Shown piece by piece: positions 9,578 to 62,303 of a DNA stretch of 64,000 nucleotides. Each line of letters begins with the position of its first letter. Position 1 is the first letter of the stretch. The DNA is from Zygnema circumcarinatum SAG 698-1b (lineage: Eukaryota; Plantae; Zygnematophyceae): positions 1,336,880-1,400,879 of the forward strand of contig CM074810.1 in NCBI GenBank assembly GCA_037447605.1, read 5' to 3'. The position numbers and the translations under genes are program-made. Under the pieces are notes generated by a model. That model was not told the origin of the DNA. It saw only the letters and a program-made list of their open reading frames with translations, and ran no database searches.

Positions 9578-11065
9578 CCCCTGCACGCAACAAGCGTGTC
9601 TTCAGAAATGATTATTTTTCACTAAGAATTTGGCCACTTGTGTGTATAAACGGCAAAAATTCCGTCAATCTCTCTAACCCCCTTAGTTATGACAGCCTTA
9701 TCAGCAAAGGTCCACGTAAACCTGCTGCAGCGACAATAAATGCCCTGTGGTGTACATAGCATGGCACGCGGTTTATCAGATGTTCGTATGGGATGTCTTG
9801 CAACGAAATTTAGGTTCCAGTCCTGCGAAAAAAACTAGGATGTCTTTTTCAAGTGCTATGTTTGACAAAAAAGGAGCTATATTTTGCTGAGTAATTTGTA
9901 CAAGAACGTATGCGATGTTTCAATGGAACGCTTACAGGCAGACTTTGACGGAGTCTGAAAGATTTAAGGGGGTCTTAAAGCATATGTCACGACGAATGAC
10001 CGAAAATATGCATGAATGCCTCGAAATGCTTTCCAAGACCCAAAATTCGTCGTCCAATTCGAAAAGAGCACATATTCAAACGCCTTGCAAGCAAGTGAAT
10101 GGCGCAAGAAACAGCGAGCCAATTTTGACCGAGCTCTGGGACGGCACTGAAGGCAAAAGTATCTTTGACGAGGGGAAGCTGCGAAGCAAGAGAATGGAGC
10201 GTATTCACCAACATATCTAAAGTGCTGCAGTCCAGCATTTTTTAAAAATCTTTACATGAATTTCACTCTCTGAATATACGCATGTTCTCGCCAGGACAAC
10301 ATAGGTAAACCTATTTTTCAATTTTAAGAGACGCAAGCTTGAATTTGCATTCTGAAAAGAACCCTATGCGCGTTCAGAAGAAGTTCAAATTATAACAGCA
10401 TTGCCTCCACGTTCCCTTCTCTTTCTTCATTTGCAGATAGTGATATGGCAGTAAGCATACTTCGCTTGAACTAGAATGAAAAGCAATAAGCGGCTCGCTG
10501 AAGTCAGTCTTGCAGGACGTTGCTTGCATTCCACCGAAAAGCGGTCAGGCCGAGCTAGATGCAATCAGGTCCCCCGTCTCCAACTGCCAGCTGTACTCAC
10601 CCAACGTCCACTAACCGTTCGACACGTGGCTTCTATGACACGTGGCACCGTGCCATTGGAGGATGCTCGAGGAAAAGTCCTGGTAACAGCTCGCAGTAGG
10701 AGAGGCCCGCCCGAATGAGACAGCCCCGATAAGCAGAGGGTTCTATGTTCCAGTTCGACGGTCGCGCTGTTGGAACTAGACTTCTCAACTGGAAATTCAG
10801 CTGACAGATGTCCAACATAGAACCTCACCAGTCCCTGACCTAATGACGAGCATGTGAGGGCGATGCCCTAATGCAAGACGGGCAGAACCCCGTCGTAACA
10901 AAGAAGCGATTTGGACCGTCGAATGCACGTGTGAAATACTTTGGGAGACGATCGTCCGTCGATCACGCGTGCGACCTGCCTGGGCCCTCGCTCTTGTTCG
11001 CAGCCGTCCTCCATTGGAACCCTTTCCCTCCCACTTCACCTTCCTCGGAGTAGCGTTGGGCCGCC

Positions 11066-12000
11066 ATGGCTGGCATCGCTATCGGGCTCAACAAGGGACA
11101 TGTGGTAACTAAGCGCGAGAAGGTCGCACGGCCCTCGCACCGCAAAGGGGTGAGCGCTTCTTTTCTCTGCTCATCCACAGATTATTTGCTGATATGGTTG
11201 CGGTAATTGCTTGACTGATCAGAATAGGGTTTCAACCTAAGTTGTCCGGAACCTGCAATTAAGAATTGTTTGCTGAATTTGTAAAAATGACTTGTCTGAG
11301 CAAGGGTTAGGGTTAGGGTTTCAACTTCAGTCATTTGAAACTTGTAAGAGACGTTCTTCTCCTGAACTAGTAACTTTTTTGAATTGTTTGACTGAGCACA
11401 TCAGGGTTTTAACCTAAGGTGATAGAAATGGCTGTTTGCTGAACTCGTTGTACTTCGTTAGAATTGCTTGACTGAATACATTATGGCCTCAACTTAAGTG
11501 TTTGAAATCTGTAAGGGACGAGTGGCATAAGCCACACGGTGAATTCGCGCCTTTCTCTGGCTGTATCTTATTTTTCTTTCCGTTTTCCTTTATTTGCTGT
11601 CCTTCTGCAGCATCTGGGCAAGCGTGTGAAGTTCGTGCGTTCGCTTATCCGCGAGGTGGTAGGCTTCGCCCCTTATGAGAAGCGCATCACTGAGTTGCTC
11701 AAGGTCGGAAAGGACAAGCGTGCCCTGAAGCTGGCAAAGAAGAAGTTGGGGACCCACCTACGCGCCAAGCGGAAGCGTGAAGAGATGACAACTGTACTTC
11801 GGAAAATGAGGTACGTGCTTTGTTGAAGTGCGTTGTCGCATCATTAGCCCTTTTACCGATTTCAATTGCTGGTCTTGTGGCGTTCTGGGCTTGTTAAGAG
11901 TCTGAGGCTATTGGGGAGTCCCTGTCAGGGCATAGCTGACCGGCATGATGTGGTGCTTGGGGCTTGCAGGGCGGGAGGAGGTACAGAAAAGAAAAAGTAA
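11066..12000 (+). CDS. RPL36: 60S ribosomal protein L36 (eL36)
   Basis: Exons 11066-11149, 11611-11810, 11970-12000: [16 protein letters not shown]...[31 protein letters not shown]...[10 protein letters not shown]. Confidence 0.97.
11225..11321. promoter_or_regulatory. Telo-boxes (TAGGGTTT) in RPL36 intron 1
   Basis: TAGGGTTT at 11225-11232 and 11314-11321; TGGGCC site-II-like motifs upstream near 10981 and 11057. Telo-box plus site II is a known arrangement in plant ribosomal-protein genes. Confidence 0.55.
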
Positions 12001-14393: not shown

Positions 14394-15317
14394 CCTCCAC
14401 ATCACTCAACTGTTGCGTTTTGATATGACTCACATCTGTTGGAGCTCTCTCCTCACAACATTGTAGAAGCGCATGGATCTGTTGCTCCTCATAAATAATT
14501 TTGTTCTACATCTTGATGCTGCCTCACTAAGACTTCAAATCTTAAAATAAACTCATCAATAAACTCTCTCCTTGAAAGACTTTTAAGTTACAAACTCTGT
14601 CCATAGAGAATTTCTTACAGCTATAGATTTCTCAAATAGATCTCTTTCAGTTTATCCCACATTTCTTTTGCTGTCGCTTTGCCGCACAAATGACAAGATG
14701 CTTTTGATCAATAAGACTAGCAATGTGATATTTTTCCTCACAGCTTGATTTCTTCCATTTCTTCAGATCTGGACCTGCCGCCACTGGTTTAGCATATGCA
14801 CCTTAACAATGTGGTATCAGAGCTGAGTGACAGAGAGTTGAGTGATAAATCTATTAAAAGAGGAAGTAAGTAAGCACAAAGAAAAGATAGGAGATTTTGA
14901 GAAAGACAAGAAAAATGAGTAAGAGCAATAATGCAGGGAAGATCTTGTCCAATAGAACAAATTATTCAACATAAGAGATCTTCACCAAAATCAAGCTGCA
15001 GAAAGAAGGATGTTGGGATGTTGTTGAAGGTACATCTGCTAAACCAAACAAAAGAAAAAAGAGAAAGAGAAAGAGATCTATCTAAAGAAATCTACAATTA
15101 AAAGAAATCTTTTATGGACAAAGTTTATGACTTTTAAGTCTTTCAAGAAGAGAGTCTATTGATGAGTTTATTTTAAGATTTGAAGTCTTAGTGAGGCAAA
15201 ATCAAGATGTAGACGGAATTATTTATGAGGGGCGGCAGATCCATGCGCTTTTACGTGAGGAGAGAGCTCCAACAAATGTGAGTTGTATCAAAACGCAACA
15301 TTTGAGTGATGTGGAGG
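14394..15317. mobile_element. Ty1/Copia PBS + leader + degenerate gag (+), with an inverted gag copy immediately upstream (-)
   Basis: tRNA-iMet-type PBS TGGTATCAGAGC at ~14813. Gag-like MSKSNN...IKLQKEGCWDVVEG from 14916. The minus strand of 14394-14808 reads AKEMWDKLKEIY...IDEFILRFEVLV (UBN2-like gag) and is the reverse complement of ~15020-15317. Confidence 0.8.
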
Positions 15318-16901
15318 TCGTATGTAACAGAGCTCTTTTGCTACAATAAGACTGTTGGTAACAAGAATATCACGCCTATTTGGTTCTTTACCAAGCACGT
15401 CTAATAATTCACAAAGAGAGGGTACAACCATCCCGTTAGTGTTGGTAGTTATAGTTCCTGGATTCTCCCCTCCTAAGCTACAGAGGGCCGGTTTTTTTTC
15501 GGTTCTTTCCCCTTCGCCGAGTCGCCGGCTCCTTCGGACATTCCTTTGCCATGTGTCCAGTCGCCTGACAACGGAAACACCGACTTTCCTTCTTCAGTTT
15601 CTCTTCCTCCTGCGGACTCAATTTTCGGATCTTTCCACGCGGGGAAGGAGCTGGCGTGTCCCCGTGGGTCTTTCTTTTCATCCCACGTCCATTCTTTCGG
15701 CGAGGTCGTTGGCTAGGTCCGCCACGACCTAAAGTGTTGCCTGCTGTGCACAAAGGACGCCCGCATCTGACGCACGAGGTGTGATAATGTCACGTGGCTC
15801 AACACGTGGACTACTGTAGCAGGCTAAGATCTAATACCCCAAAATGCTTCCCTCGCTCCTCACAGAATTTCTTCCAGTCACTGCATATCGCGGGCTGCAA
15901 GCTCTTAAACACTCTAAAAGCTTCACCCCACAGTGACGGGTAGGCATAGTTCACCCACTCCAGAGGTGGGCATCGGGTGGCGTGGAGGTAGACCTGCCCT
16001 AACCACTGCTCAATCGAGCAGTCGGTCTCGGGGCGCTCACCCCACCCTGTCAATAGGGGTCACCTCGGCCCTATTACTGTGGGGCGTGGTCCGGGTCGGG
16101 ATGATCCCACATCGCCAGTGGGAGTCCCAAAAGGGATTCCTCCACCACTGGGTTGTGCGTCCACCTCCATAGATTGACTCCCCCCGTAGTCGAGACCGGG
16201 GGAAGAGCTTCTTGCCGCAGCAGGGTGGGATACAGGGACTGCAAGAACAGGGGACGTAGACACAGCAGGGGGTCCCTATAGGGAGGTCCCTCGCAGACAC
16301 GGATCTAGACTACATCAAGGTGCGTTACGTGCGGTATGGACACTGACAGTGCAGCCTGGGGACTACCGGACGTACCTGTAGTCTTCCGCAGGCTCTCCCT
16401 GACTTCCGCCAGGTCCTTTTGCAAATCATCCCGGACGCTATCCAGGAGATTGCGGTAGTTCTCTGCAGCTGTCTGTTGATAGAGTTCCAGCTGCAGCATC
16501 CGTTGAGCTTGCAGAAGGTACTGCTCCCTCATGGCACATACCAACTCCCGGAGCTCAGCCTGCTCCGTCCGAATCCAATGCCCAGCCCTTACGGAAATGG
16601 GCTGCTCCATCAAATGTGGGGCCGTCGGGTCCCCCGGTTCTTCCTGCCAGGGCCCCTGCCCTGGCGCAGGTCGCCACTCCGGGGAGTCCGGAATCAGCGG
16701 CGACCAAGGTCCGGAGGCAGTGGAGCTGACCATAGGCAACTCCGGCCGCTCCACCTTCGTGGGAGCTGCTCCTGCTGATTCCTCCCCCCGTGCCTGGTCC
16801 TCCTCGTCCCGAATCAGCCGCGGTGGTGGTTTTGAGAGGCCCGCATCCCCTCCAGCTCGCTCCAGACTATAGATCCGTACTATACACCTTCAGGTTCGAT
16901 A

Positions 16902-18257
16902 CTGTACAGTACTGTACAATACAGTACAGTACAGTACAGTATCCCCCCTCCGACTAATATTTTCGCCATGGTTTCGGCAAATATTTTGGGGCAAAAATCT
17001 TGGAATTTGCAAATATAAGGAAGTCGAGTGTTACGAATAGGCGGGTGGTATTATGTTAGAGTCCCGGGTGCGGCCGTACTGTTTCTCTCTGTACGGAGGC
17101 ACATGGCCGCCCGGCGAGCCCTGTCGCGAGCTCCTATAAGTGCCGTACATTTAACTACACAAGCTCCTATTGGTGCCGTACGTATACCATACGATTAACC
17201 GTACCTTTTTTTTTGGAAAATTCTATTCTCACACCTTTTTTGTCTACGCACAGACCTCTTTTCCCTGGGCAGGTTTTAAAATAGACAAAAAAGGAACACA
17301 CCTTTCACACCTTTTTTTTTTCACCTTTTTTTTCACATCTTTTTGGAATCGATACACGCTACCAGTCCTGAGCGGCCGAGCGCCGTGAGACCTTTTTCTG
17401 TCGGGCAGATTTTACTCCTTATCATTTATTTTCAGAGAAAAAAATATCTGCCTGCCCGAATCCGTTCGCAGCGGAAGATCCGTCCGCCACGAGATCGTTC
17501 GCGGGTGGCCGTCCTTCACACGTGCAATAATTTTCCGCCGTCGATATTCACGCAGATCGCACCATGGCAGATCACCGTTCGATCAGCAGCCGGGCTCTGT
17601 CCCACGTGTCCCACCCAAGCCGGCTCCAAGGACCGTACAAAAGGCGTACGCCCGCAGCTTCGAGGAAAGTCAAAAAACGTAATAATTAAAGTTGAGTGCC
17701 TGTACCAATCACAGTTTGCCACGTCTAAAAAGAGCACGCGGCAGATGGTGATTGATTCAAGCTCGCAATGTAAGGAATTTAGACTTTCCTCGAAGCTGCG
17801 ACCGTACGAATTGTGTACGGTCCTCGAGCCTGCTCGGGTGGGACACGTGGGCGTGTGCCATTCGCTGGAACCGAGCCCGGCTGCCGATCGAAAGGTGATC
17901 TGCCGTGGTGTGATCTGCTCTAGAATCGACGGTGTATAGTTTCTGCACGTGTGAAGGACGGCCACCCGCGAACGATCTCGTGGCGGACGGATCTTCTGCT
18001 CCGAGTGGATTCGGGCAGGCCGATATTTTTTTCTTTGAAAAAAACAAGAAAGGGTAAAATCTGCCCGATGGAGAAAGGTGTGTATCGATTTCAAAAAGGT
18101 GGGAAAAAAAAGGTGAAAAAAAAAAGGTGAGAAGGTGTGAAAGGTGTGTTCTTTTTTTGTGCTATTTTAAAATCTGCCCGGCGAAAAGAGGCCTGTGTGT
18201 AGACAAAAAAGGTGTGAGAATAGAATTTTCCTTTTTTTTTCAGACTGTACTGTACAG
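16902..18257. mobile_element. TA-flanked MITE-like insertion with short inverted termini CTGTACAGTAC
   Basis: TACTGTACAGTAC at 16900-16912 and GTACTGTACAGTA at 18247-18259. Removing it rejoins the two gag ORFs in one frame. Confidence 0.6.
17215..18231. mobile_element. Non-autonomous Mutator-like (MULE) foldback element, 1017 bp
   Basis: ~455 bp TIRs (17215-17671 and 17782-18231) beginning GGAAAATTCTATTCTCACACC; 9-bp flanking direct repeat TTTTTTTTT (17206-14, 18232-40). The ORF track shows near-identical peptides on opposite strands. Confidence 0.85.
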
Positions 18258-19149
18258 TAAGCACCCTGTAGCACAAGATAAGTGGGGTTAAGGGGAGACT
18301 GCTGAGCTAGTTGCAGGTGCTGTACGGCCACTCGCGCGTCCGTGCTGAAACTGATGAAGGGTTGTGTTGGTGTTGTGGGTCTGCCTGCAGCATAGAGCCA
18401 GGATCCGGGGGATTCAGAGGTACGCGCAGCGGAAGACGTAGGGATCCTGAAGATGTTCCCACCGGCGGCTGGACTCGATGCGCAAAGAGCCCTTCCTTGG
18501 GGGCTCTCTTCCCCTGTCCTCTCTTCGGCTATTCTCTTCGCTAGACTTCTAGTTATCATCGGTCATTGGGAAGAGTGTAAGGCAGGATATCACAAGATGG
18601 TAGCTTGGCATAGTGACAGCAAAGGGAAAATAGGACTCAGCTTAGATAAAGGTTGTGTTTTGGAAACTCACCCCAGCCAGCGATTGGCTGGGGATTGTCA
18701 TTACAATGAAAGTGTCTTCTCACTGAAATCTTTGTCTGGCTGGGCTGAATGGGATGTCTAAATGCTATCAGCAAGAAGACTCTTTCTCTTTCTCTCTATG
18801 CAATGGAACTCTCTCTCTCTCTCTCTCTCACTTAGCATCTGTTGCTGGAGCTGAAGAGGCAGAAAAAGAAGAACAAGACAACAAACCACACAGCAAATAC
18901 AAATACTAAGCCCAGCACTAAAAGACAAACTAGCATCACTGACATCCCATCTACTTATCACTGACAGTAGATCCTGAGTCTTAGCAGTGACAGTCTCTGA
19001 TTGGCCAACTGCCCACTGAGAGGCCTGACTGACTACGTGGAGCCTTATGATAGGTCAACAAATGACAATCGGCGGCATTATGCGGCGCTTCCGAGTGCGC
19101 CTTGCTGGATGGTGTGCTGTTCCGTGGGCCGCCAACACATGGCGCCGCC

Positions 19150-19940: not shown

Positions 19941-20571
19941 GGATTGGTCGAGTAATCCTGCAGTACTCAGGATGAGCTTGAATGTGAATTTTGGCGTTGT
20001 TCCGCTACTAAAACACGACTTGCATATGAAGGAAAATTTAACTGCATTGCATGGAACTCCTCGGTCACTATTTGGTGACCAAAGATTTGTCAAAGCATGG
20101 CACGCCGGCAACAACGAGACACGCTGAAAACATCTCGGACATCACATGATGGAAAAAGCATGATGTCGACAAATCAACAAATAGCAACATCACAGATTAC
20201 GTCACACAAGTTCAATCTTAGCACTCAGATCAGTGAACAAGACATGATACGGAGTACCGAGTCAAGTCCTGCACCATGAAGAGCCGCAACAAAGGGGGAT
20301 ACATCCTGAGCTTCATAGAACTGCCGAGAACCTCACAGGTGCTGGGTTGGTTGTGCTATTGTCAAGGAGCAAGCCACGAACAAATATGCATGCAGCATGA
20401 GCCCCGTATTTTTAATCCCCATATATGTGCATTTTTTACATAAAGGCGCTTAAACAATATTTTGCACAGCTTCAAAATCCTGAAACCCGACATGCAGGGT
20501 TATTGTACGTGCACATCACCAATTCAAGATTTCCCCTATAACTTGCTAATAATGTGATACTCCTGCGGCGA

Positions 20572-23500: not shown

Positions 23501-25213
23501 GTGAATGAAGACAATCGCAACTGGTGGATAACCACCATCACCAGTTCAATGCATGGTCGTAAACATAAACCCTCAAAGCAAGAAGTCCCCTATAGTGCTC
23601 CGTACTACTCGACTTTTTAACCTCCCCAATGCAAATGAGATGACCCACCGACTAGCCCATCCGCTTTGCTGTCAGCAATAGACGAGAGAGCGCTCCCGCC
23701 CCGCCGAGCAGCCGCTGTCCCAAAAATAAGGACAGAAACAAAGGCGTCGCAGACCTGAAAGGTAGTCCGGAAAAAATGCTGCGAGTGAACGTTTAGCTGC
23801 GTCGGGAGAAGGTTGGTCGGCCAAGAGGAGGTCGGATATGGGGCCGAAGAAGAGGTTGAAGAGAGAGTGGGCTTCACGGAGCACATCTCTTAAGGCCTCC
23901 GTGCGTATGTTTTCTTCTACTCCAGCTGTTCCGCCCTTTTCCGCCACCTGAATGACCACAGGGGGATGCCTGAGTTCGAAATTCAAAACTTTACGAGAGT
24001 GCAGTGGTCAGCAGAAGTTTTAGATAGGCTAGTCGCTCTGAAGTTTGCAGAATATGGAGATTGTTTCGGTCGGCAAAGAATGCAGTGGTAAGGTGATGCC
24101 GCATACCTACCAGCACCATCCAGATGGACGGCTCGCATTCCAGGAAAACATGAATGTGCTTCTCAGCATCCATGACCTCACATGGATGCGCCGGGGAAAA
24201 CACTCTGTTCATGCACAAAACAAAAAACATCAACAGCCAATGTTCTTCTGTCCGAAGAGTCGAGAACGTGGAGGTATAACCAAATCACGCATTTCAATTT
24301 GCACAGTGCAAGCAATACGAACTGCCTGTGCATTGTGGGAAGACAGTGGCAGCAGCGTATGTGAAAAACAAGGGTACACATTACTTGTTAGAGGATCTCG
24401 CTGTCAATGCTGTGTCGCTAAGTATGTTTGAAGAAAGATTCAACAACAAGATTCTAAAAAAAAAAAAAAAAAAAACCTCGGCATGAGACAAGAAAGGTGG
24501 TTGCTACTAGTAACCGTGCAAAACAATTTGCATGAGAAATAAGCTTACATCAGATAGGGAGATGGTTTTAACTTCACCAGATAAGTTGTTGACTAATTCT
24601 CATAAAGCAAACCACGTCGATAACTGGTTTGTAATACAACTCATGCAGTGGGCGATATGCCAGGGAGCAAGAATTCCATATTGTTGAAAAAAATTGCAAA
24701 CACCAAAAGCATTCCCTACAATCGACACCATCAAGGGAAAAACCAACAGAGCTCCAGTCTACGCCTTAAATATTCTTACCCCATTTTCCGTTTTAACTCA
24801 AGCAACTGGATTTCATTTCCTTCTCTGGCACTTTGGTCTTGTTGGAGGTTCGTTCAGGAACATATTTCGAGACAATCTTCTAGATATCATAAAACATAGG
24901 TTTCTTCTAGAAGAAGCATCGAGCAGCATGGTGCTCCACCACAAACGGTTCTACAAATTTCGAGCATGTAGATGATGATAATTTGATAGTGAGAGACTCG
25001 GAGAGTCGAAAGATCAGAGGATTAGAGGAGGGCTAACCGGGTGAAGGTGATGAGGCCCTCCGCCAAGCCCACGAGAGAGAGCTGCTCCCACGGAGCAGTG
25101 CGCTCCGGAAAGAAGTACAAAATCTTGTCCGCCTCCTCGCCTTCTTGCTGACCTCGCCTCGTATCGAACACACAGAGGCGTAAGGCCTGCGCGGCGCTCG
25201 CAGGCCCCACCAT
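20572..25213 (-). CDS. CCZ1: Vacuolar fusion protein CCZ1 homolog (MON1-CCZ1 Rab7 GEF subunit)
   Basis: 9 exons: 25213-25038, 24204-24111, 23947-23755, 23400-23303, 22954-22856, 22496-21819, 21602-21447, 21236-20974, 20602-20572. N-terminal longin motif LCVFDTRRGQQEGEEADKILYFFP...VGLAEGLITFTR; C-terminal ERASETLLLASEAVE. Confidence 0.92.

Positions 25214-25223: not shown

Positions 25224-25290
<67 letters not shown>
25224..25290. repeat. (GA)n microsatellite just upstream of the CCZ1 ATG
   Basis: Direct inspection; (CT)n on the sense strand, typical of plant 5' leaders. Confidence 0.95.
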
Positions 25291-25292
<2 letters not shown>

Positions 25293-25609
25293 GCGGTTAT
25301 TCCCCAGTTGTCACCCTTCAAACTTTCAAGGCCTCCGAACTCCACACTCACTTGGAAGCAAACTAAAAAACGCGAGGACCCAGCCAATCTCGACTCGCCA
25401 CGAAAGCACTTGTGCACACGTGGCGAGCCACCATTTGGAGGAAGGAAAGAAGGAACGCAGGAATGCCCCGCAGGGCTGTTCTGTGATCTCAGTTAGGCCA
25501 CTGTCCCTCCTGCCTGTGTAGCTGCGACTGGAGCATAGAACCAGGTACACAGAACCAGCGCCTTGGACTCCGGCTCTCCCCGGCCTTGCTCCCTCACTCC
25601 CCTCCAGCC

Positions 25610-25825: not shown

Positions 25826-27841
25826 CGCGGCTGGTTTGCTGGCAGTGTGGATTAGGTTTTTGGATTCAGCAGATGGAGCGAGGTTTTGGATGACGCAATG
25901 GGAAAATCTGAAGTTTGAATCTCCTGTAATTTGGAACACTGAAGAAGAAAACTCGGGTGGGATGAGGAGAGGTGCTGCCTGAAGCCTGGAATATATGTGG
26001 AAGAGACGGCTCAATGAAATCTTGGCATTGCGGGGAGGGCGAGTCAACGTAGGACTGAAAGCATGACATTGGTATGGTGCGGTAACCCGTTTTGTTGATT
26101 TCGTGGCTTCTCTTCTGAAGTCGCTGTCCACGAGTTGAGAACTTTCTGTTACAGTCTGTGTTGAGAGTTTATGTAGTCACTGGAAAAGGTTCAAGTCGAC
26201 ACCTCCATTCATCCATTGCAGGACATTGTAAAGTAGAGAACAACTGCTTTTTGCTCCATTTCTGTGGAGTACAAAAAAATAGGCAGAAATTAAATTTCAA
26301 TGTAAATTTTATTCTAACGGAAGACTAGTTGGCTCGATCTCTGCCATGCTGTGGTTCCTCCCCTCGTTTCTTTTCTCAAAGAAGGAGACTCTGTTTTGGT
26401 CATTTCAGAAGGATGATCCTATCACTCATTGTACTTGCGACAAGGCTTTCTTCTGCCACTGAAGAGCATCTGCTTCATGTGACACCCTACCACTGCAGAT
26501 ACTCTCATCCCCTATCTGAAGCTGTCCATCTGCGCATGCAGCACATAGGAGCCCCCTTAGGAAGGAAAGTGGCATTGAACTCACGATGGCGAGGCCATCA
26601 AATGTACATGGACAAAAGCAGCATGGGGAAGGAATCACGAGGAACAGGTCGCAAAGGACCTAAGCACAAAAGAAAAAAGCTAGGAGCGGAAAATTACGCC
26701 TCGGCCCCTTAGCTTTCCATACGCATTCGTAATTTTGAACCAGAACCAGTTGCACTAAATGAGCACCAAAATGCATTCAACCTCAGCATGAACAGGGACA
26801 CAACTTTTTCCATCGCTCCAACCAATGCGGCTTAACAAATTTGATAGTGGTTGTTACAAGGCTAAGACAGGTTGTCTTATCAAAGCCATCTTCACCGTTC
26901 ATCGTTCCTGCATTAGTGTGAACCAAAGCCCCACAAACTTTGATGGATGGCGTAATAGAGTAGGCCACACTATTTACGCCAGTCGAGAATTGAATCACGT
27001 ATTCCCTAAAAATATGTTCTTATATTCACACTCATTTTGTACTTATACATAACAAATACACTAAGTAGACAACCCACTCTAATTGCGCCATAGACATTTC
27101 GCCAAACCAGCAACTGGTGCGGGTCACTCTAATTGCATGCTCACACTGAATACGATGACCGATGCGCAAGTGCGCAGTTAAGGGAACATCCGAGAAGGAG
27201 AGGGGTGTGGCATTGATCCGAGAACAGGGAACATCCGAGAATGGTTCATGAAGGACATCAGGGCCTGTCATCTTGAAAAAACTCAGGAAGAATTGCCATT
27301 GTAAAACCCAGGAAGAATTAGCGTTGGTTCTGGCGATGCCGATGCCACCAAAGGTGGACGGACACAAACCGACATGGAGAACCACGAGGAACCGCAAGCA
27401 GAGGAGAACGGGATGAGCTGCACCCGCCAAGGGCGCAGGGACAAGGGCCCCTCGAGGCAGTCCCAGCCAATCAGGCGCTGCCACGGCCGCATCCAACTGG
27501 ACATGTGAGTCAAGCGATCGGATTGATTGATGGGTTCAGGGCTCAAAGCGGGTCCTGAACCCCGCGACGGCGGAACTTGGACTCGACGGTCGTCCAGTGT
27601 CAACGCGCCACGTGTACAAAGTGTACACATGGCGCGTCTCCATTGGACCGTGTTCGGATCTGGCTCGCAGTAGAGGCCTCCCTGCCTGCCTGACCTGTTT
27701 CTCGCCGCCTTTTAGTACCTGCGTCTGCCCATCTGTTCATCTCTTCTTGCTCTGCGCAGCGCAGCGCAGAGCAGAGCAGGACTATGTAGGGATAAAGGTT
27801 GAAGCTTTGCAGCTTAGAAGTTTTGGGGCGCTGTTCTGGCC

Positions 27842-32144: not shown

Positions 32145-32969
32145 GCGGAGTCCCTTGCCCTCAAGTAGGGGTGCCGAGGGAGGAGAGAGGGAGGGGGGAG
32201 GTTGTGCCTTCACACGCAATAGAGAGCAAGCTCGTGCCCTCTTTACTGCAGCCACAGTATCACTTGTATCAGATGTACAGTACGTGCTGGAGCACCTTCA
32301 AATGCAGCACTGCAGATCCAGTGCGCAGCCCAAAGGGTTCCTTGTCTCATGAGGTGGTCCTTACGGGCCTGTGCATGTCCATTGGATGAAGAGTATGTTT
32401 TGTGTGTGCATCTATCCTGTGGAAGTTGACCATAGATTCCGTGTATGCATAGGTCGAGGCATCCGTCCATTCCGTTTTGACCACAAGCCACTGCCGCTAC
32501 TAAATTGTTCCTCAAAAAGCTCTGAATACGTGTTAGAGGCAACTACGCAGTAGACCCCCCTCTCCCCCGTGCCTATGACACAGCACAAAACTTTTTAAGA
32601 AGCCAAAGCGAAATACAATAGAAAAAGAAAAATGAAAGTTTCACACCTTTTCTGGCTAGATACACAGAGAGAAGGGTAATATCTGAAAACTCTCCCAATA
32701 GACAGACTTCAAATGCCATATTTGGAAATATCGCCGAAAGATTACCGCCCTGTATCGCCCTTAAAAGGGAGTCCCTTCCACGGAGAGGGCACCGTCGGGC
32801 AAACCCTTCAGTGCCAGCGTGTCCAGATTAAACTAATTACAGTACGCCACGTCAGAAAATCTGCAACGTGGGAGTCCGTGATTGGCCTGCTCCTAATAGG
32901 GCAAACTCGATGGAGTCCCATCCCAAGCCCTTCCCCCCTCCCCCGTCCCTTCGCTCCCTGCTCTCCGCC

Positions 32970-34883: not shown

Positions 34884-36156
34884 GAACAGCCTTGTGCTTT
34901 CTGTATTTTTTTCTGCATCAATTCTTTTTTTTCTTTGTTGGGTTCACTTTTTGAAGAGGCGTAACCGATGGACTATGGACGAGATTAAAGTTCTGTCCTT
35001 ATTTAAAGTGGCAGGCGCAAGCCCTAGATTCTGCCTGTGGGGGGACTCTTTGAAGGTGTGAATCAGAAAACAGTTTGGCAGGGAGGGAGTCGCTTTATGA
35101 GACTCCTTTGAGACCTATTGAAGCTTTTTTTCCTATGTAAGGAATGAGGCTTCCTGTTTTGACATCAGAATCGTAATCGGTGCTATTAAATTACTGCCCC
35201 CTCATCAGTAAGTTGCTGTCAAGTGTCACAGTCGAGCATCATCCAATGGCAATTTGCCACGTGGATGTCGTGTACGTGGCGAGTCGCCATTGGTCGAGTG
35301 CAGTCCGTCTGCTTGCTTGCTGGCTGGCTCCATGCCTTCGCTTCTTTTGTGGGTACCCGCTCGCGCAGGTCCTTGGGACAAAAAGAAAGGAAGGGACAAG
35401 TCTCCACCCTGAAAGAAAAGAAACCAAACGAAACAGTGAAAGCAAGACTCTGAACCATAGAAATTATATGCGGTTTGGGCATATGAAAGATGAATTGTAC
35501 TATCCACCTCTGTATGCGGATAAACTCCACAGCCATGTGAGGAAACACGATGTACATTTCTAGAGCCTGAAGCGTGGTTGAGCCTAGAAACAGATGTCCG
35601 CTCATACCATAGCTTCTTTCTTTTGTCCTCAGGCCCTTTGCGACTAGCTCCTCGTGGTTCCCCATGATGCTGAGTTTGTCCATGTACATGTTGTCTATGA
35701 ATCTGCGCACAACATTGTCCGCCCGCCCACACGAGACCAACACATGGTCAACTTGCAAGCCTCACAACTGGCCGTGCCTAGACAGTAGACCAGACAGACC
35801 GGACACACGACGATGGCCGCCGTACCATTACGTACGGGTTCGTACTGTACCCTCTGGCGCGAGATGTCGGTCCGCCCGCAGGGAGGGAGGGGGGGCGGGT
35901 CTCCATTCAAGGGACCTCGCAAGTGAAGGCCAATCACGGCCTGCCACGTAGGCATGAATACTGACGTGGCAGACTGTGGTTGGTCGGGCTCGACAGAGCC
36001 CCCTTGCGGCTTTGTACTGAGGAAGCCTCGACTCCGGCCGGAGTGCAAGCGATGATGCATCACGGTATGAATCACAGAATTTGCGAAAGAAAAAGAGTGG
36101 CATATGCTCGTTTGCTTCATTGACATTCACTCAGGCAGGGAACGTAGTTGTCTTCG

Positions 36157-45949: not shown

Positions 45950-48385
<2,436 letters not shown>

Positions 48386-48807
48386 ACTTCCCCTCTCTCC
48401 CCTCTCCCTGTATCCCTCCCTGCGCTCCCCCTCACCCCCTCTCATAGCGGGCAGTAGTGCCCTATTCCCGTTCATCGAACGCTCTCGTCCTCACGATTCA
48501 ACACGCGTTTGTTTACCGTTGCGCCTGCTGCCGCTGCCTCTGCCGCGGCCACGTGGCAGCCTCTTGTCGTTGTCTTTGCGTTTTCCTGTCGCGTGTCTTG
48601 CTGCATTGCTCTGTTTTTGTTGTTTGTGCTTCTTTTCGTTTTTTGTTTTTTGTTTTTGGTTGTTTTGCTGCTGTTTTGCTGCGGTTTTTTCTGTTCTAAC
48701 GTTTCTCGCCTTGTTTTCTGACATTTTCTGCCGTAGCTTGTCTTGCTGTGTTGCGTTTTTCCTTTTGTCTCCCCCTTTGCGTCTATTCGTCCTTGTGCTT
48801 CTTCTTT

Positions 48808-48817
48808 NNNNNNNNNN
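48808..48817. other. Assembly gap (10 N)
   Basis: Run of N. Confidence 1.
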
Positions 48818-50241
48818 GTGCTGCAGTTGTTGGTGACCGTGTTGGTGGACTTCCGCCGCTCCCTCCTCGCGACGTGCCTCACATCGGTGACCTTTGCGGC
48901 TGCTTCTAGGGCTGCGTTGTTGTGCCTAGGCGTAGTTTTCCGCTCCTAGCTTCGTTTTATTGTGTTTCGGTCCTTTGTGACCAGTCCTTCGTGGTTCCAC
49001 ATTTTGCCTTTATCCATGTAAATTTGATGGCGAGGCCATCGCGAGTTCAATGAAAGTTTGCGTTTTCTCTCGTCCTCCATATCTAGAACAAGACGGTGCA
49101 CATTGCTCCTAGTTCGGGACAACTGTCTCAATCGTTCCTATCGGACGGTCACGCACTGCTCGCAATCGAACGGACCAAAATCACGGTCCGATTGCATCCA
49201 AAGGCTGAAATCTGTCCGATCGGAAGCTTTCAGCGAGTTTTGGGTTTCCTCGGTTGTACGGATCACATTCGCTGACCGTACGATCAGCGTACGGCTCTGA
49301 AGCGTGCGATCCATGCTACGACGTCTGTCCTACTTGCCAGTTGCGTAGTCAAAGTTTAACTGCGAACAGAACTGTGCCAGTTTTTCATGGAAACGGAGGT
49401 TCTGGAGCCCCAAAGGGGCGAGGACCCCCTCCTGGAAATCCCTCCGCCAACGCAAGCTTTGCCGGATCGCCACGTGTATGCTTTTATATACGTGGCAAAT
49501 TTCTATTGGCCAATGCGCGCCTGAGGAGGACGAGCGGCTGCTCTGCGGTGCTGGAGAAGAGGAGGACAGTTCGCTATCATTGAGAAAAAGAAGGAGACGA
49601 AAACTTCTGCGTTTTGGAGCGGAGGCGACGCAATAGCAGCAGCAGCAGCAGCAGCAGCAGGCAGGTCGGGTTGTTATCTGGGGGGGAGCTTGCTCCGGTG
49701 CGAGAGGCCTGCCTGGGACCGTGCGGCTTATAAGACTTTTTATGTTTAAGTTGCTTGATGGCTCCTCTGTATTGCTCGTCTCTTCTCTGGCGTCTGCGTG
49801 TCCATGCATTTCTTCCTCGCTTCCTTTTAATTTACTCCGCTTCCTTCTTCTTTTGGTTCCTTTTGCAAGCTGCTTCCTTGGTGTTCAAGGAAAGAGTGTC
49901 ACAGTCACCTCTCTCTCTCTCCCTCTCTCCCTCTTTTCTTGCCAGCTGTCAAGCTGAGCTACAACTTCGAATGACATTTTTTGTGGCCACACGTTTGTTT
50001 GTGTTGCTTGCCGCCCACTTTATATTGTCCGCATTCTTTGAGCATTTGTGTCTCGCATTCTAGTGAAGAAACTTCTTTCTGGAATATGCGTTGGTGTGAA
50101 CAACGACATACTCATTCATCCATCCAATCGATAACTTCGGTGTTAGTTTATCGTCATTAGAGCCGCTTCAAATGTTCACTTTTGAATGTGCATGTAAGGT
50201 CTCCTTTTTGACATGTTCTTCTGTGTCTCCTGCAGGCAGTT

Positions 50242-50716
50242 ATGGCTGACGTGGCAGGAACTTGCTGGGACAGCGTTGCAGTCTTTGCTGCTATCGCTCT
50301 GCCTCCCCTCGGAGTTTTTATGAAGAAGTCGTGCTCCCTAGAATTATTGGTGGGAAAACAGTCTACAGGATACAGTCTAGGTTATTGTTGGAGCGGTCTG
50401 TTTTTTTACGATGATGTTTTGTCCTGGTTTTTCATTCGCCCCTTTCCCCACTGTCCTTTCCTGTCCTCATTTGGAAATTGTAGAATTCACCTTTAAAAAC
50501 GTGAAATGAACTGTTTTTGTGTATAGGACTAGTGGACAGCTTCATTACTCTCCTTGAACCGCCACTCATGTGAGTTGTCTTTCGTAGTTTTAATGCCCAG
50601 GCAACTTGTAGTCATGCTACTTTTCGTCGTTTTCTGTGCAGATTTCCGTTGGGCTGACCATCTTGGGCGTTGTTCCAGGAATGGTTTACTCCGTGTACAT
50701 TGTTGTCGATGCGTAA
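50242..50716 (+). CDS. PMP3/RCI2 (UPF0057) family small hydrophobic membrane protein, 60 aa
   Basis: Exons 50242-50349 and 50642-50716: ...AIALPPLGVFMKKSCSLELL|ISVGLTILGVVPGMVYSVYIVVDA*. Family motifs LPPLGV and LTILG..PG..Y..Y. Confidence 0.88.
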
Positions 50717-52079: not shown

Positions 52080-54259
52080 TCATCTGGGCGTGACATGTGG
52101 ATTGAAATCGATCCCTCTGCAGCCAATCACAGCCCGACAACACACAACCTCCGCGTCTTTAATGCGTCCTTTAGATATACGTGCAGGGCGGAAACTTCAA
52201 AAAGGAAGTTACGAAATGCGGAACGGCAACCGCACCCTGATTACATTACAGGCAGGCAACGCAGGCATGAACTGACTACCCCCTCAAAGAGAGAGTGAGA
52301 GAGCGAAGGGAAGGGGAAAAGGGAGGGGGGAAGGGACAGTACTTTGATCACAAGTATCTTCATACATACGCATGTCACACATTCATCAAAGACTGTTGGG
52401 CACACACCTTTGCCGCGCTTCTTGGCGTAAACCTTCCACTTCGCGCTCAAGGGAGAGGCACGCAACCTCAATGTCAACATTTTTTTGAACGAGCGCCTTC
52501 CACTCCCCTTCCAGTCTGCTCAGTTCAGAAGCAGCAACTTGCTGCAGGCGAGAAAAGGGCACCGTCAGTGACTTACAAGTGCTACTACGCAGTGGGGGAC
52601 TGAAACGGGTGGGAGAGGGGGGGGGGGAGAGAGCGAGAGAGAGGGAGAGAGGGGAGAGGGGAGAGATTCTCTAAAAGCAGAAACCACACAACCTTGAGCA
52701 GCGTGTACTTGACAAGTGACTCATCACTACTACAATTGAGCAGCTAATCAAGGTGTTCCAAGAATGGTCACCTAATAGAACTACAAAAAAGTGAAAATCT
52801 GAAAATCAGAGTGACCATTGAATAAGTCCAATTTGCTTCTCTGCAAGGTACGCTTGATACCTCACCTGATTCAGTTTCCTGTCCCGATTTACTTCCTCCA
52901 TTTCCTTTTCTGCTTCTTTGTTCAGCGCAAGCAGCCTGCAAGTCCCACACGAGCCCACCTTTCAACACAATATATGTGACCCAGTTATAACTACAAAAAC
53001 CTGTACTCACAGATCAAAACTAACGCGCTGAAAAAGTGGCCCTTTCCTATATCGAATAAAGAGTCAGCGAGGAATAGCCAACCTCGCTTCAAAGGCCTCC
53101 AGATGTTGATGATGTATCCGATGCATGTTCGGTCCATACTCCAACATAAGCTCCAAGTTCTCCACCCTGTTGCCATGAAAAGGCAGCAGCATCAGCTCAG
53201 CTCTCACCTTTCCTGCCTGCGCTGAACCCACCCCCCCCACAGGAGAGGAGCCATGAAACCTTTACTTCCTGCTTTGACACAGAATACAAGAAACTACACA
53301 CTTCCTTCACCACGATGTGTGTGAAGGAAGAGGGGAAGCGACCGAAAGGAAAAGCAAACAAAGCTGATCATGAAATTGAAGAAGAAAAATGACATGAATA
53401 CAAACACACACGAATGCTATTTATATGAATGTTTGATGATTAACTCACCTAAGGACCTGATGCTGCAGCTGAGCCTTTGCATTATCGACTGCCGCCTTCC
53501 AAGCGTTGAGGTCGTTTTGCTTGTTAGGGGGAGGGGCGGCGATAGAGTAGCGGGAGGTGTCAATTAGGGTTGGAGGTCTGCCAGCTCGCACTCTCTCATA
53601 CTCTTTAGCAAGCATGGGGCTTCCCTGCAAAAAACATCTATACTCTGTTCAGTAACGAAACACGTATGCATTGTGTAGTCAATTATTAAGAAAATCGTTG
53701 CATTAGAATGAGCTAACGGATTTTGAACAACCTCTAACAAATCCTCAAGCTCATCCTGAACACTTGCAAAGCAGAAAAATCCAAAAAAAACCCACAAACC
53801 CTCATCGACCCTGGCTAGCCCTAACCAACCACAACCAGCCCTAAAAACTCCACCAATTCCTCAAGAACACAAGCACGCAGGAAAAGAAGCCCACTTCAAA
53901 ATTCGGCCCAAAAACTCACGAAACCCTAACCGAACCTTATCCCATTTTGAAAGCCACCCCTCCAACATCCACCCCTTGACCCAATCAACCCCATCAGGCC
54001 CGTGCAAACGGGCCGAGTCGCGCACCTCGAAGTTGGGGGGGGGCACGGGCGGCATCTCCTGCAGGAAGGCGGGCGGCTGGCGGGCGGCGCGCTTCTCGTC
54101 CTGCACCATCCGCACGGCCTCCGCGCGCAGCCGCGCGTCCTCGTACTCGCGGTCGATGTAGGGCAGCGCATCCGCCGCAGCAAGGCTCCGTGACAGCCGC
54201 CACGTGCCGCGGTCCCCGGAGATCGAGGGATCGCCCTCCAGGAGCAGTGGGGCAGCCAT
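52080..54259 (-). CDS. SPF27: Pre-mRNA splicing factor SPF27 / MOS4 / BCAS2
   Basis: Exons 54259-54026, 53624-53449, 53166-53083, 52935-52866, 52541-52408, 52116-52080. Motifs DALPYID, AWKAAVDNAKAQLQHQ, NLELMLEYG, VNRDRKLNQ, EWKALVQKNVDIEVAC. The last short exon is less certain. Confidence 0.93.
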
Positions 54260-55165
54260 GGAGGGAGAGGGACGGAGGGAGAGAGAGGGACGGAGGGAGG
54301 GAGAGGGACGGAGGGAGGGAGGGAGGGGTGGGACAGAAAGGAAGGAGAAGAGGGAGAGGGAGAGGGAGAGGGAGAGGGAGAGAAGACGACGGAGAGGGAG
54401 GGTGCAAAAAAGGTAGACAGAAGCGGACTGATGGAAAGAGGGGGCGCGAGGCCGGGGGTGGTGCCGGGTTCTATGTGGAAAATCGACATTTGTTGGCTCT
54501 GCAGTTAAACACGCTACTGGAGGATAATGTATTGGTACCGATATCATATTGCCTCTGTACCGGAAGCGTTATTGTATCGTAGAAGATATATCAGTACCGA
54601 TAAGTATCGGATAGATGCTGATTTCGTGGCCGATATTTTTATCGTTCCGGTGTTGTACTGGGAACAATAACGTATCGGCTCGATATTGTATCGTTTGAGA
54701 TGTCGATATTGTATCAGTTGCGGTACTGTACTGGCATGGCTATCTCTTGAAATATTGGACTGGACCCGCTACTGTTATTGCATCGCGATCGATACTGTAC
54801 CGAGCGACTCCCAGAGGTTTGAAGAGGCTGAAGATTCAATAGTTTGCCTGTACTGTACTCATGGGAACTGGAACGCTCAATTCTTGCCACAAACGAGGCA
54901 ATACAAAACATGCACACATCAGGACTGAGCTGAATTACTTCAAGAAGTTCAAACCCAAAGAAGGTTAAACCCTGGTGATGATGTTGCTGGGACCTCGGAC
55001 CTCAGACCCCTTTACACATCTCATCAAAACAAAAGAGTTGAACTTTCGTTTACTTCTTGCAGCCGTTCAAGCACAGCAAAACCGACGAGCTGAAACAAGA
55101 CCTAGAAGCCTCTTGCAGGAACATTAACACATTTCTCGCCACCGCAATTGCCTTTGGACTGTGGA

Positions 55166-55975: not shown

Positions 55976-56019
<44 letters not shown>

Positions 56020-57857: not shown

Positions 57858-59421
57858 GGCTGCACATGGAAAGGTGAGCTCGCAGGAAGGCAGCAGCGGA
57901 GCTTCAAGCAAGCGAGCACGCAAGTTTGCAGAGGACCTTGCGAGCAATTCAGCGTGCAGCATGCAAGTCGTGCCTGTGCTCGTACGGGAGGCAATTCAGT
58001 TCGAAACACAAAACAAGGGATGAAGTTACCAAGTCCATGTGTTCCGAGCTTTTATTTCTTTCTCATTTCCACTCTTGGAAACCCAAGTCAATGCCATTTT
58101 CCTCTTCAAGTCTTGGAATTGACTCATGTGCTTGAGACTCGTCGCTGTATCAAAACGTGCATCGTGTTGCAACACAAGTTTTTATACATCGTTTCGCGTC
58201 TAAACATGCAAAACCAAGCATTTGCATTCCCAGCACATGCATTTTCTTTCCACATGCCATGCACATGCAAAGCTTGCATTGCCCCGTCTGCACGTGAAGG
58301 GTATCGCAAGTACTTTGTAAACAACCACCTGCGCAGGATCACCCGTCCATAGTCGAAGTTCCAACAATGACAACCACAACACACGAGCAGGCTGCACACG
58401 GCTGTGTCCTCAGCAACACTGCGCAGCAGCATTCCCATTCCCTTACAGTTCCAGCACTGTTGGACAAATCACTCTGAGTCAAACTTGGGACTAGCGTTGT
58501 GGTTCAGTCATTGGGCATAGCTCGTTCCTTTTCGTCCTTAGGTCCCCTGTGAGCGATTCCTCGTGGTTCCCCATGCTGGTTTCCATGTCTGTTTGATGGC
58601 ATCTCCATGGTGAGACCAATGCCAACTTTCGCTTGAATTCATTGGGGGTTCCAGTTTCCAGCCTTGTGGCTTGTGGATCGTTCTCCATTGCAAACTTCAG
58701 TCGAGCATCTTCCAGTTCAACTCGACACGTGTAAAAGGGGGTCAACGTGGCAAGTTCACACTGGACGATGCTCAGCTATCATTCGCCATGGGAAAAAGCA
58801 CTTAAAAGGAAATTCAGTATCCAAATTCCATACATCAAACTGCGCCCATAGCTCGATGATATCATCACATCTGTCTTAACTAACAATAAAATCCGTTGAC
58901 ATTACCTTTGTCAGAGAGAGGTGTATAAAAACAAGACATGGAAATCTAATCAAGACGAAATATAAAGCTGAGATTCTAATCCACAAAATAAACCGCTACA
59001 GTTAGTTCACTCCAACCCTAAAATGAAAATATATTTTCGTTGCCATAATACATCTGAAAGAAGAACTTGTCGGAACAAACCAAGAAGCCGCTCCCTTTCC
59101 TGCTTACCTCCTCTTCTCTTCTTTCTCTCTACAGCAAGTTATTCCAAATCTTCCTATCAGTTTTTCCAAATAATCTCGGTGCTAATTTCGACCCGATGTG
59201 ATAAAATCCGGTCAATTTCTGTTTCCACTCTCCGTGGTTCTACTGAAGGGCCTGCATTCAATCATGGTCTGAGATGCAAAAAAAAGGAGAGGGCCCTTAC
59301 GGGAAGGGGCATAAAAAGTGAATACAGACACGAACTTACATGGCCTTAAATCAAATTCCCAAAAGACCCAAGAATGTTACTGATTTCCAAAGGCTTCGCA
59401 AGAATTCGCCCGAGCCAAAAA

Positions 59422-61563
59422 TTAGTCAGAGTGTACGGCCGATGCTATTGTGGTCGCCAGTTGCTGCTCCACCCAGGTCTCAATCATATCCTGAAAACAA
59501 AAAAGAGAAAGTTGAATCAAAATTTGCCATTAAACGGTAACGTTAACCAGACGCAACATCACCATTCAGCACATTGGGAAAATTACTCCTTAAATACCAC
59601 TCACTTACCTGTGAATTCACAGACTCGTCTGCAGGAACTTCATGCCCAGCACCTCGGAGGGTGTAGTGAGTAAGAGAGGCAAAGGTTCTCCTGTATCCGG
59701 CCAGCTGTCCGTTAACATGCCAACGTTCTCGCGGCGATTGAAAGAAAATATTAAGGTGACCCCACTGTAATGTGCGCATCCAATCTTCAGACGAGGCAAC
59801 TCCATCCTTAATGTCGTATAAGCCCTGATAAAGGAGTAAGGGAAGCTTGGGAAGGAGAGCCTCCACCATCCACTTAGTGCTCTTCATGGTGTCATTCCTC
59901 ATGGACTTCCGAACACGCGGGTTGCACGAGACCCACGTTGTGTTAATGTTAGCATTAAGAGCCACTTTTATCTGTAAAACCAGCGCAAATACGAAGGGTT
60001 CGTTGAGGACGAGAGCGAGTGGGGGAAGGGGGGGGGAAGAGTTGAAGGAGGTACAGAAGAGTGATAGGCGACCGGAGAGAGCGAGGAGCAGGTGGGACAA
60101 AAACAAAGCGTGAGAGAGGGCAGAAGAAAAGAGCTGCCTGGGGAGGGAGAGAGGGAGGGAGGGAGGGGAGCCCTGCTCGATGAACGCACCTGGGGCTGAT
60201 TCAAGAACAAAGCCAGATATTCTTGCCCTTGACTGTTGTAGTGGTATGCGGCGTCGCGCCGCACATCCAACAAGGTGGCGAGCCCACTCACATTCTGGCA
60301 AAGCCATTCAACAAGCACAGGAGGAACGAAGTCACAGATGAGCAAAACGTGGGAGGCATGGGGCTTGGCAGCAAAGGAGACGCAGACAGGAAGGGTCTGG
60401 AAAAAGATTATTTAAAGCAGCAGCTCTTTGTCAAGACTGTAGAAGGGAGGGACAAATTGTGAAAAAACATCCAATCAACCTGTACCAGAATTCCTTTAAC
60501 TGCCAGAAAGTAAGCTGGTTTTCATATAAGATGTTCTTTCACCCCACTTCCGATAAGTCTGGTCAACCTTACACATGTCTGTCTAGTACATCCTTAGTAT
60601 TTTGTGTTCACCCTAAAGCTTCTAAGCTTCTAAGCTTCTTCTTCTCCTCTTCCTCTCAAAGGTATCCAAAGGTACTCGACTCACCTGAATCCAGTTCACA
60701 AGCTCCGTTCTCGCAGTGTATGCAGCTTCCCACTCCTCTTTATCTATGAGCGCCACAACTGCTACAGCCAAGGCTTCGACATGTAGCTTCTGCTGATAGT
60801 CAATCACTCCAAACTGATATGCCGCCTCCGCGTGTCCTTGAACTTGTATTTTTGGATCAGTGAGCCCATTCCCAATAACAAGACCTTCAAGCCTAAAAGG
60901 GCGCTCATATCTCTCTCCTGAGCCCTCTCTCACTCCCGTAGCTTTTGGTAGTCGCTCAAAAGGTTTTCCCTCGGCCTCCTCTATCAGCTTCACTACGTGA
61001 TATCCAAAGGCAGGCACATATTTCCCGGCATAACTCTCTCCCGCAACAAAAAATGGCCTGTTGTGAAAGGAAGGATGCGCTTTGTAAAACTCTGTGACTG
61101 CAGAGTAGAGATGTGCGGCAACGCTTGGCTGATCTGTGGGAATATCTTCATCTTTTTCTGCAATACTGTATCCTGTTCCCACCGGACTATCCACAAAAAG
61201 CATGCCATAGCGCCGATTCCATGCGCCCTTGTTCTCAACCACCTGCAGCTCACTGTTTATCCTCCACCTTCCCATTTCATAGAAATTTCCGATTCCTCCA
61301 GAGCATCCCGGCCCTCCTTGCAGCCACAAAATGATCGGAACTTCTTCAAGTTCTCGCTGCGGGTCGACAGCTTCATAAAACGCGTAATACATCTGAGCAT
61401 TGGAGGATGCGTTGGCCGTCAAATATCCGCAATCTGTAGGCCTTTCTTGCTTGAGAAGCATAGCGTAGGGCTTTTGTGCAGTAAAGAAGCTGTGCGTGAA
61501 GTTAGGGTTGAAGCAAAGCGCCGCCAAGAGCACCAAGAGGCCGACATAGAGCGACCACGCCAT
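59422..61563 (-). CDS. Serine carboxypeptidase-like protein (peptidase S10, SCPL50/CPVL-like)
   Basis: Exons 61563-60685, 60294-60190, 59971-59609, 59490-59422. Signal peptide; WLQGGPGCS, FVDSPVGTGYS, catalytic GESYAG, LLYQGLYD, GAGHEVP. Confidence 0.95.
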
Positions 61564-62303
61564 GGCCGAACCCTAACCTGCCCTCTCTCCCCTCTTCACC
61601 GAGCACAACTTGACACCTGCGCACAGCCAAACGCAGGTGGCAGCCCTGAATGCTGCGGGGAAGGCATGTGACGCCGCACTTTATAGGGAGGGGAGTGGAG
61701 GGGGAGGGGGGAGGGTGAGGAAGGGGCCCTCTTTTTCCATTGTACCTCTAGTTCAACATATCCAATGGCGTCATACCACGTGACACATTGTTCATACGTG
61801 GCAGATATCTATTGGATCGTACATGTCAACTAGCTCGCACTGGAGGCCCAGACAGAGCCACATATCAAAGGGTGGGCCTCCTCTCGGGACCTAGAACCAA
61901 TCACCGTCTGCTACGTCAGCAAATGCTATCAACAGCGCCAATCACATATTTCCACGTCATCAAGTAAGCAGGGTAAATTCACAGCGTACGCGAGGACTTC
62001 CTGCTAGAGTCGCATATGAAACAGTACGGTCGTACATTCCTGCCACGTGGATAAATTCAGCTGTCGACACGTGTTGCATGGCGTCGACACGTGGACACCA
62101 GTCGGGCGCGGAGAACCGGTGGACCGTACAGTGCCTGGGTGGGTCGTCGTGGTCTGGGCGGCCGGCTGTCGTTTCCCCGAGGGACTGCCGGCCGGCGAGA
62201 CGGCCGGCCGGCGCAGCGCAGACTGGCCGGCTGGTCTGCCAGGGCGGGACGGGGTCCCGGGGCGATGGACGCCAGGGCACGAGAGCAGGCGGTGGGAGGG
62301 AAT

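Follow-up and report, generated by a model that had tools for sequence, protein, structure and literature searches.

Composite sites that join a CCAAT box to an ACGT-containing word have been described in several settings. In mammals, the endoplasmic reticulum (ER) stress element of type I (ERSE-I) reads CCAAT-N9-CCACG, with NF-Y on CCAAT and ATF6/XBP1 on CCACG, and its plant counterpart, pERSE, reads CCAAT-N10-CACG and is bound by bZIP28 together with NF-YA4/YB3/YC2 (PMC3645738). Human NF-Y is also found paired with E-box factors (USF, MAX), with CCAAT and CACGTG 10-12 bp apart in promoters, enhancers and LTR12 (PMC4889920, PMC3730095), and in Arabidopsis NF-Y and bZIP proteins are partners in abscisic acid (ABA) and seed programmes (PMC3602376). 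Here we analyze a 64-kb window of the genome of the streptophyte alga Zygnema circumcarinatum SAG 698-1b (assembly GCA_037447605.1, contig CM074810.1, positions 1,336,880 to 1,400,879), to which all counts refer unless another genome is named, and in which the word CCAAT-N9-CCACG recurs far above chance, mostly as a palindromic dyad. The initial annotation of this stretch had called the motif the ERSE consensus, and correctly so (PMC3645738): the bipartite word and its 9-bp spacer are identical to those of ERSE-I, the ACGT-containing half lies 3' of CCAAT, and both orientations occur. What is new relative to the ERSE is the palindromic doubling, usually into a facing pair of 51-54 bp, a set of extra constrained positions (SRCR, YG, T), a density of about one locus per 6 kb, and a placement before housekeeping and plastid-protein genes, not with chaperones. 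On balance, we favor a reading in which the dyad is a lineage-specific, general, promoter-proximal cis-regulatory module of many unrelated genes, probably bound by NF-Y and a bZIP protein.

A pattern search on either strand yields 12 exact copies of CCAAT-N9-CCACG, about 100 times the chance level; dinucleotide-preserving shuffles contain 0.11 on average and at most 1, and none of 100 reaches 12. The nine copies reported initially are all present at their coordinates, but the total had been underestimated, since those at 17705, 25384 and 27467 (all on the plus strand) had been missed. The enrichment is tied to a single spacing. When the spacer is varied from 0 to 30, exact CCAAT-Nx-CCACG gives the 12 matches at N9 and none elsewhere bar single ones at N24 and N25 that result from two neighbouring sites; when one mismatch is tolerated, 22 matches at N9 compare with 0-4 at spacers 3-16, making the peak at spacer 9 unique in the window. 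Mononucleotide shuffles predict about 2-3 one-mismatch N9 matches by chance, and the matches at 19036 and 33051, which lack the extended consensus described below, are probably this chance fraction. The one-mismatch copies listed earlier all exist, three of them one base away from where they had been placed (correctly 35965, 58746 and 61897), and further ones are found at 17846, 25419 and 32833. No copy overlaps a recognisable coding exon, in agreement with the intergenic placement first proposed, and one locus lies inside a transposon. An assembly gap at 48808-48817 is 674 bp from the nearest copy (49491) and splits no copy and no pair, its effect being limited to distances between loci. A few hundred bases before this gap ends a near-pure (TC)n microsatellite of 2.4 kb (45966-48385; 1,216 units, 97% matches), and difficulty in assembling this tract may explain the gap.

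The predominant form of the motif is a dyad of 51-54 bp, CCAAT-N9-CCACGT-N11-14-ACGTGG-N9-ATTGG. Our census comprises eight dyads in which both halves have at most two mismatches, with an offset of 32-35 bp between the halves, two half-decayed dyads (49456/49491 and 58711/58746), three solitary halves adjoining dyads (27467, 61897 and 61938), one half-site in a transposon arm (17846) and one weak candidate (54474), and the window holds ten loci. Two decayed partners, 10608 for 10641 and 17737 for 17705, were recovered by a weight-matrix scan. The gap between CCACGT and ACGTGG measures 11, 13, 14, 14 and 14 bp where both words are exact, and 13 and 14 bp in two near-exact pairs, which places the ACGT cores of facing half-modules 15-18 bp apart. 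Paired half-modules are always facing; no back-to-back pair occurs in the window. The convergent pairs noticed initially thus follow a fixed geometry.

An alignment of 20 credible half-sites reveals constraint at positions outside the search pattern, on both the CCAAT and the CCACG side, and gives the half-module consensus YYRR-CCAAT-SRCR-N3-YG-CCACGT. On the 5' side of CCAAT, 16 half-sites have a pyrimidine at position -3 and 16 a purine at position -1; downstream of it, C/G (17/20), A/G (17/20), C (14/20) and A/G (18/20) follow in turn. Ahead of CCACG, position 13 is a pyrimidine in 19 of the 20 and position 14 a G in 16 (P=1.5e-7), and behind it position 20 is a T in 18 (P=4e-9). A G after CCACGT, completing CACGTG, is found in only 7 of the 20. 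Measured from centre to centre, CCAAT and ACGT are separated by 15.5 bp, roughly one and a half turns of the helix. Four half-sites further carry a GAGCATC block two bases outside CCAAT (10654-10668, 35234-35248, 58703-58717 and 58759-58773; 0.25 expected), with no homology found around them beyond block and motif; the block may be an optional site for a third factor.

Two other interpretations of the symmetry were set aside. Between the two arms, neither the N9 nor the central spacers are complementary, so the dyad symmetry reflects protein sites and not an RNA hairpin. An NFI-type site was considered for the TGGC-N5-GCCA present in seven half-sites and dropped, as the remaining half-sites lack it and NFI is a metazoan factor. 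The window also holds a solitary perfect G-box palindrome, GCCACGTGGC, at 48549-48556, without a CCAAT partner, and seven CCACGTGG palindromes.

What can be discerned from this anatomy about the proteins that read the dyad? The CCAAT flanks fit NF-Y: the consensus of the 20 half-sites has YYRR before the box and C/G, then A/G, after it, to be compared with the consensus YYRRCCAATCAG and its flanks YYRR..CAG (PMC3507159). The other half, GCCACGT, is ACGTGGC on the opposite strand and therewith a half-site of the G-box/ABA-responsive element (ABRE) type known from plants. Conservation of the G at position 14 and the T at position 20, but not of the final E-box G, makes a bZIP half-site with an ACGT core a better fit than a bHLH E-box. 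Cooperation between an NF-Y subunit and bZIP proteins is established in plants, and to our knowledge no palindromic CCAAT/ACGT dyad of fixed spacing has been described for plant G-box/ABRE or NF-Y-bZIP systems; the algal gene set, moreover, is unlike those systems in not being obviously related to ABA or light. With the human NF-Y/E-box pairs the module shares a CCAAT box and a CACGT core that are set a constant distance of about one helical turn apart, an occurrence at many non-stress promoters, and a part of the population residing in repetitive elements. It departs from them in lacking the conserved final E-box G, which points to a bZIP-type half-site, in keeping to a single spacing instead of a 10-12 bp range, and in having palindromic doubling as the rule.

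We infer the binding proteins and an activating function from these sequence features. An NF-Y trimer would sit on each outer CCAAT box and a bZIP protein would recognize the ACGT core, of the G-box/ABRE type GCCACGT, on each inner site. NF-YA reads the minor groove of CCAAT and bZIP proteins read the major groove of ACGT; at a centre distance of 15.5 bp, given the structure of NF-Y and the geometry of B-DNA, the two would face the same side. The invariant 9-bp spacer would reflect a direct contact between NF-Y and the bZIP protein, as with ATF6/bZIP28 and NF-Y in the ER-stress element. The dyad would then consist of two NF-Y/bZIP units head to head and be neutral in orientation, and it would probably keep the promoter open and drive basal transcription of many unrelated genes rather than of a stress regulon.

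The loci and half-sites are, in order of position:

10608..10659, dyad; right half exact (10641-10659, minus strand), left half decayed (10608, two mismatches); GAGCATC-N2 outside the right half; 407 bp upstream of the RPL36e ATG at 11066.
17705..17755, dyad; left half exact, right half (17737, minus strand) with two mismatches; at the symmetry centre of a foldback element.
17846..17864, half-site with one mismatch, minus strand; in the right arm of the foldback element.
25384..25437, 54-bp dyad; one half exact, the other with one mismatch; 171 bp upstream of the CCZ1/longin ATG at 25213 (minus strand), with (CT)33 on the sense strand in between.
27467..27485, solitary exact half-site, plus strand; 109 bp before the next dyad.
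27594..27646, 53-bp dyad; one mismatch in each half; 196 bp upstream of the ATG at 27842 of a plastid methyltransferase-like gene.
32833..32885, 53-bp dyad; one half exact (32867), the other with one mismatch (32833); 85 bp upstream of the thylakoid-like ATG at 32970, with a C/T-rich tract in between.
35243..35293, 51-bp dyad; both halves exact; GAGCATC-N2 on the left.
35930..35983, 54-bp dyad; one half exact, the other with one mismatch; 174 bp upstream of the ATG at 36157 of RSH (RelA/SpoT homologue).
49456..49509, half-decayed dyad; right half exact (49491, minus strand), left half keeping GCCACGT with its CCAAT lost; 733 bp upstream of the Pmp3 ATG at 50242.
54474..54492, candidate decayed half-site, minus strand; found by weight matrix only, with a score of 15.0 (a shuffled sequence has on average 0.2 sites above 14); the inferred BCAS2 start follows after about 280 bp.
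58711..58764, decayed dyad; right half with one mismatch, left half shifted by one base; GAGCATC-N2 on both outer flanks; 784 bp upstream of the ATG at 57962 of an unnamed minus-strand gene.
61762..61815, 54-bp dyad; both halves exact; 199 bp upstream of the serine carboxypeptidase (S10) ATG at 61563 (minus strand), with a C-rich tract and then TATAAAG in between.
61897..61915, solitary half-site with one mismatch, plus strand, GCTACGTCA.
61938..61956, solitary exact half-site, plus strand; 41 bp after the half-site at 61897 and in the same orientation.

On its other side, the dyad at 25384 is 173 bp from the beginning of a putative plus-strand open reading frame (ORF). The dyads at 35243 and 35930 are separated by an interspersed repeat of about 120 bp. 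Directly adjoining the half-site at 49491, positions 49505-49514 read ATTGGCCAAT, a perfect back-to-back double CCAAT box.

Gene starts were taken from single-exon Pfam matches and ORFs, with exons searched singly, and distances were measured to start codons. Pfam identifies RPL36e (plus strand, ATG 11066), CCZ1/longin (minus, ATG 25213), RSH with its HD_4 exons (plus, ATG 36157 or 36235), Pmp3 (plus, ATG 50242) and the S10 serine carboxypeptidase (minus, ATG 61563), as well as Raptor, BCAS2 and an acyl-CoA dehydrogenase. The methyltransferase-like and thylakoid-like genes are based on ORFs with transit-peptide-like starts; a Pfam search of the former (ATG 27842) gave no match, and its identity stems from the initial annotation. 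Five dyads lie 85-199 bp upstream of ATGs (CCZ1-like 171, methyltransferase-like 196, thylakoid-like 85, RSH 174 and carboxypeptidase 199 bp), and, with the 407 bp measured for RPL36, the proposed placement upstream of the RPL36, thylakoid, RSH, carboxypeptidase and methyltransferase starts holds. In four of these five genes the interval between dyad and ATG contains a C/T-rich tract on the sense strand, which the RSH interval lacks. The tract of the CCZ1-like gene, (GA)33 on the plus strand at 25224-25290 and hence (CT)33 on the sense strand, is probably part of the 5' untranslated region. CCAAT boxes bound by NF-Y typically lie about 60-100 bp upstream of the transcription start. The order of dyad, tract and ATG would suit a transcription start a short way behind the dyad. 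The genes behind the module are functionally unrelated (RPL36e, CCZ1-like, RSH, S10 carboxypeptidase, Pmp3), and no ER chaperone or ER-associated degradation (ERAD) gene is recognised by Pfam among the neighbors, as the initial annotation had already maintained for chaperones.

How widespread is the module? In the protein collection searched, which lacks the window's own carboxypeptidase, its best relatives are lycophyte and Closterium proteins of 50-57% identity (57% being the best value with exon 1 as query). We compared the surroundings of the homologous gene, about 20 kb each and 105 kb in total, from three Closterium species, Marchantia polymorpha and Selaginella moellendorffii. These five streptophyte loci contain no exact CCAAT-N9-CCACG, with 19.7 expected at the density of the window (P=3e-9), and their five one-mismatch N9 matches compare with about six expected by chance. 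A strict 22-base dyad pattern likewise found no match in Joint Genome Institute (JGI) metagenome contigs. Absence from both sets marks the abundance of the module as specific to this lineage among those sampled, and none of the papers in the library searched pairs the motif with streptophyte algae. Of the two alternatives offered initially, the one of a lineage-wide NF-Y/bZIP module of general promoter use is favored by the fit of the flanks to NF-Y and G-box/ABRE sites, the unrelated downstream genes and the absence at orthologous loci. As regards the Closterium loci themselves, a Ycf54 gene lies downstream of the carboxypeptidase gene on the opposite strand in all three assemblies, adjacent in two (L003 and L005) and about 6 kb away in the other (L001), and L005 shows an excess of CCACG (162 in 22 kb) that probably stems from a repeat.

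Several observations weigh against a general promoter module. At three loci the nearest ATG is distant (407 bp for RPL36, 733 bp for Pmp3 and 784 bp for the unnamed gene), and the dyad at 35243 follows closely behind a gene, with the last thylakoid-like exon about 360 bp ahead of it and the RSH ATG about 860 bp further on. The Raptor, BCAS2 and acyl-CoA dehydrogenase genes have no upstream copy within one mismatch. The third base after CCAAT is a C here and a G in the animal NF-Y consensus, and the base after CCACGT is variable, so that members of several bZIP groups, or another reader of ACGT, could be the partner. For reference, the exon of the Raptor N-terminal domain is at 2713-3174 and the first BCAS2/SPF27 exon at 53864-54568 (both minus strand), and BCAS2 has only the weak candidate at 54474.

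Chance or a compositional artefact would account for the two or three expected one-mismatch matches and nothing else; it is already refuted by the counts, and the unique N9 peak, the constrained flanks and the fixed pair geometry speak against it as well. It is very unlikely, too, that the copies are genuine ER-stress elements controlling an unfolded-protein-response regulon, as in animals and Arabidopsis. Their word is identical to the ERSE (PMC3645738), all 12 exact copies keeping strictly to N9, four half-sites read CCACGTCA, the complement of the TGACGTGG of the unfolded-protein-response element (UPRE) type, and the S10 carboxypeptidase is a secretory-pathway enzyme. Against this, the genes in question encode a ribosomal protein, plastid-targeted proteins, RSH, CCZ1, the S10 carboxypeptidase and Pmp3, where ERSE-I belongs to promoters of ER chaperones and quality control, and for this reason we do not file the copies as ER-stress elements; one locus per 6 kb is, moreover, far too dense for one stress regulon. 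We consider it unlikely, though less so, that the geometry is functional but serves another reader or purpose, be it a lineage-specific factor or a bHLH protein, or a role as chromatin-boundary, nucleosome-positioning or replication-origin element. The factors are, after all, deduced from DNA motifs, seven of the half-sites hold a CACGTG that a bHLH protein could bind, the dyad at 35243 has a same-strand gene on either side and is far from a start codon, and in human cells NF-Y and USF together also occupy unmodified chromatin away from promoters (PMC3730095). Yet the final G of CACGTG is not kept as are the G at position 14 and the T at position 20, and most dyads are within 85-200 bp of a start codon.

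The remaining alternative, which we regard as rather improbable, is that the copies are mainly passengers of foldback or Mutator-like elements (MULEs) seeding near genes, their promoter position reflecting insertion preference and not selection. One such element is indeed present: 17215-18231 is a non-autonomous, MULE-like foldback transposon of 1,017 bp, with long inverted arms that are 75-90% complementary and 21-bp perfect inverted repeats at its termini, and with T9 on both sides, a possible, low-complexity 9-bp target-site duplication. It resembles foldback transposons that carry regulatory sites in bearing a dyad (17705-17755), exactly at its symmetry centre, and a further half-site in one arm, and the GAGCATC-N2 block of four half-sites could mark common descent. 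In BLAST searches no second copy of the element was found in the window, and searches with 800-bp windows and the foldback, microsatellites masked, found among the other nine loci no homology to each other or to the foldback beyond the 20-50 bp motif itself; nor do these nine have inverted termini. Inverted termini, a target-site duplication and homology past the motif thus characterize at most one of the ten loci. The initial suggestion that the motif was spread by transposon termini fails on these grounds, as the element carries its dyad in the middle and not at the termini, and flank homology is missing elsewhere. The N9 and central spacers, too, vary between copies while the factor-contact positions are kept, a pattern of selection on binding sites and not of recent copies. 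There is nonetheless a real, if minor, contribution of transposons that carry the dyad internally.

Two further repetitive features lie near the loci. An interspersed repeat family of about 130 bp has four copies, 70-85% alike (26565-26682, 35572-35689, 48914-49052 and 58516-58630), all intergenic and near promoters; it was rejected as a carrier of the module, which is not within the repeat and whose distance from it varies. Next to the foldback element, 15291-16889 contains minus-strand ORFs including a CCHC zinc-knuckle (gag-like) stretch and is probably a retroelement fragment.

Our characterization suggests a scenario for the promoters of a group about whose promoter grammar almost nothing is known, the streptophyte algae. 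As a promoter module, the dyad precedes roughly half of the recognisable genes of the window, and its short, fixed geometry makes it directly testable. A more far-reaching proposal, which we advance tentatively and with some reserve, is that the rigid palindromic NF-Y/bZIP double composite is the main promoter-proximal element for a large share of the genes of this lineage, perhaps spread in part by foldback elements and perhaps with GAGCATC as an optional third block. If so, an architecture known in animals and flowering plants only as an ER-stress switch would here serve as a general promoter grammar, the NF-Y-bZIP composite of animals and Arabidopsis would be shown to be capable of housekeeping use, and the partnership of these factors would be older and broader than its role in stress. 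The absence of the module at the Closterium, Marchantia and Selaginella loci would then represent a case of lineage-specific cis-regulatory rewiring, and the dyad would provide a compact, portable promoter unit for a sister lineage of land plants, which could serve as a minimal synthetic one.

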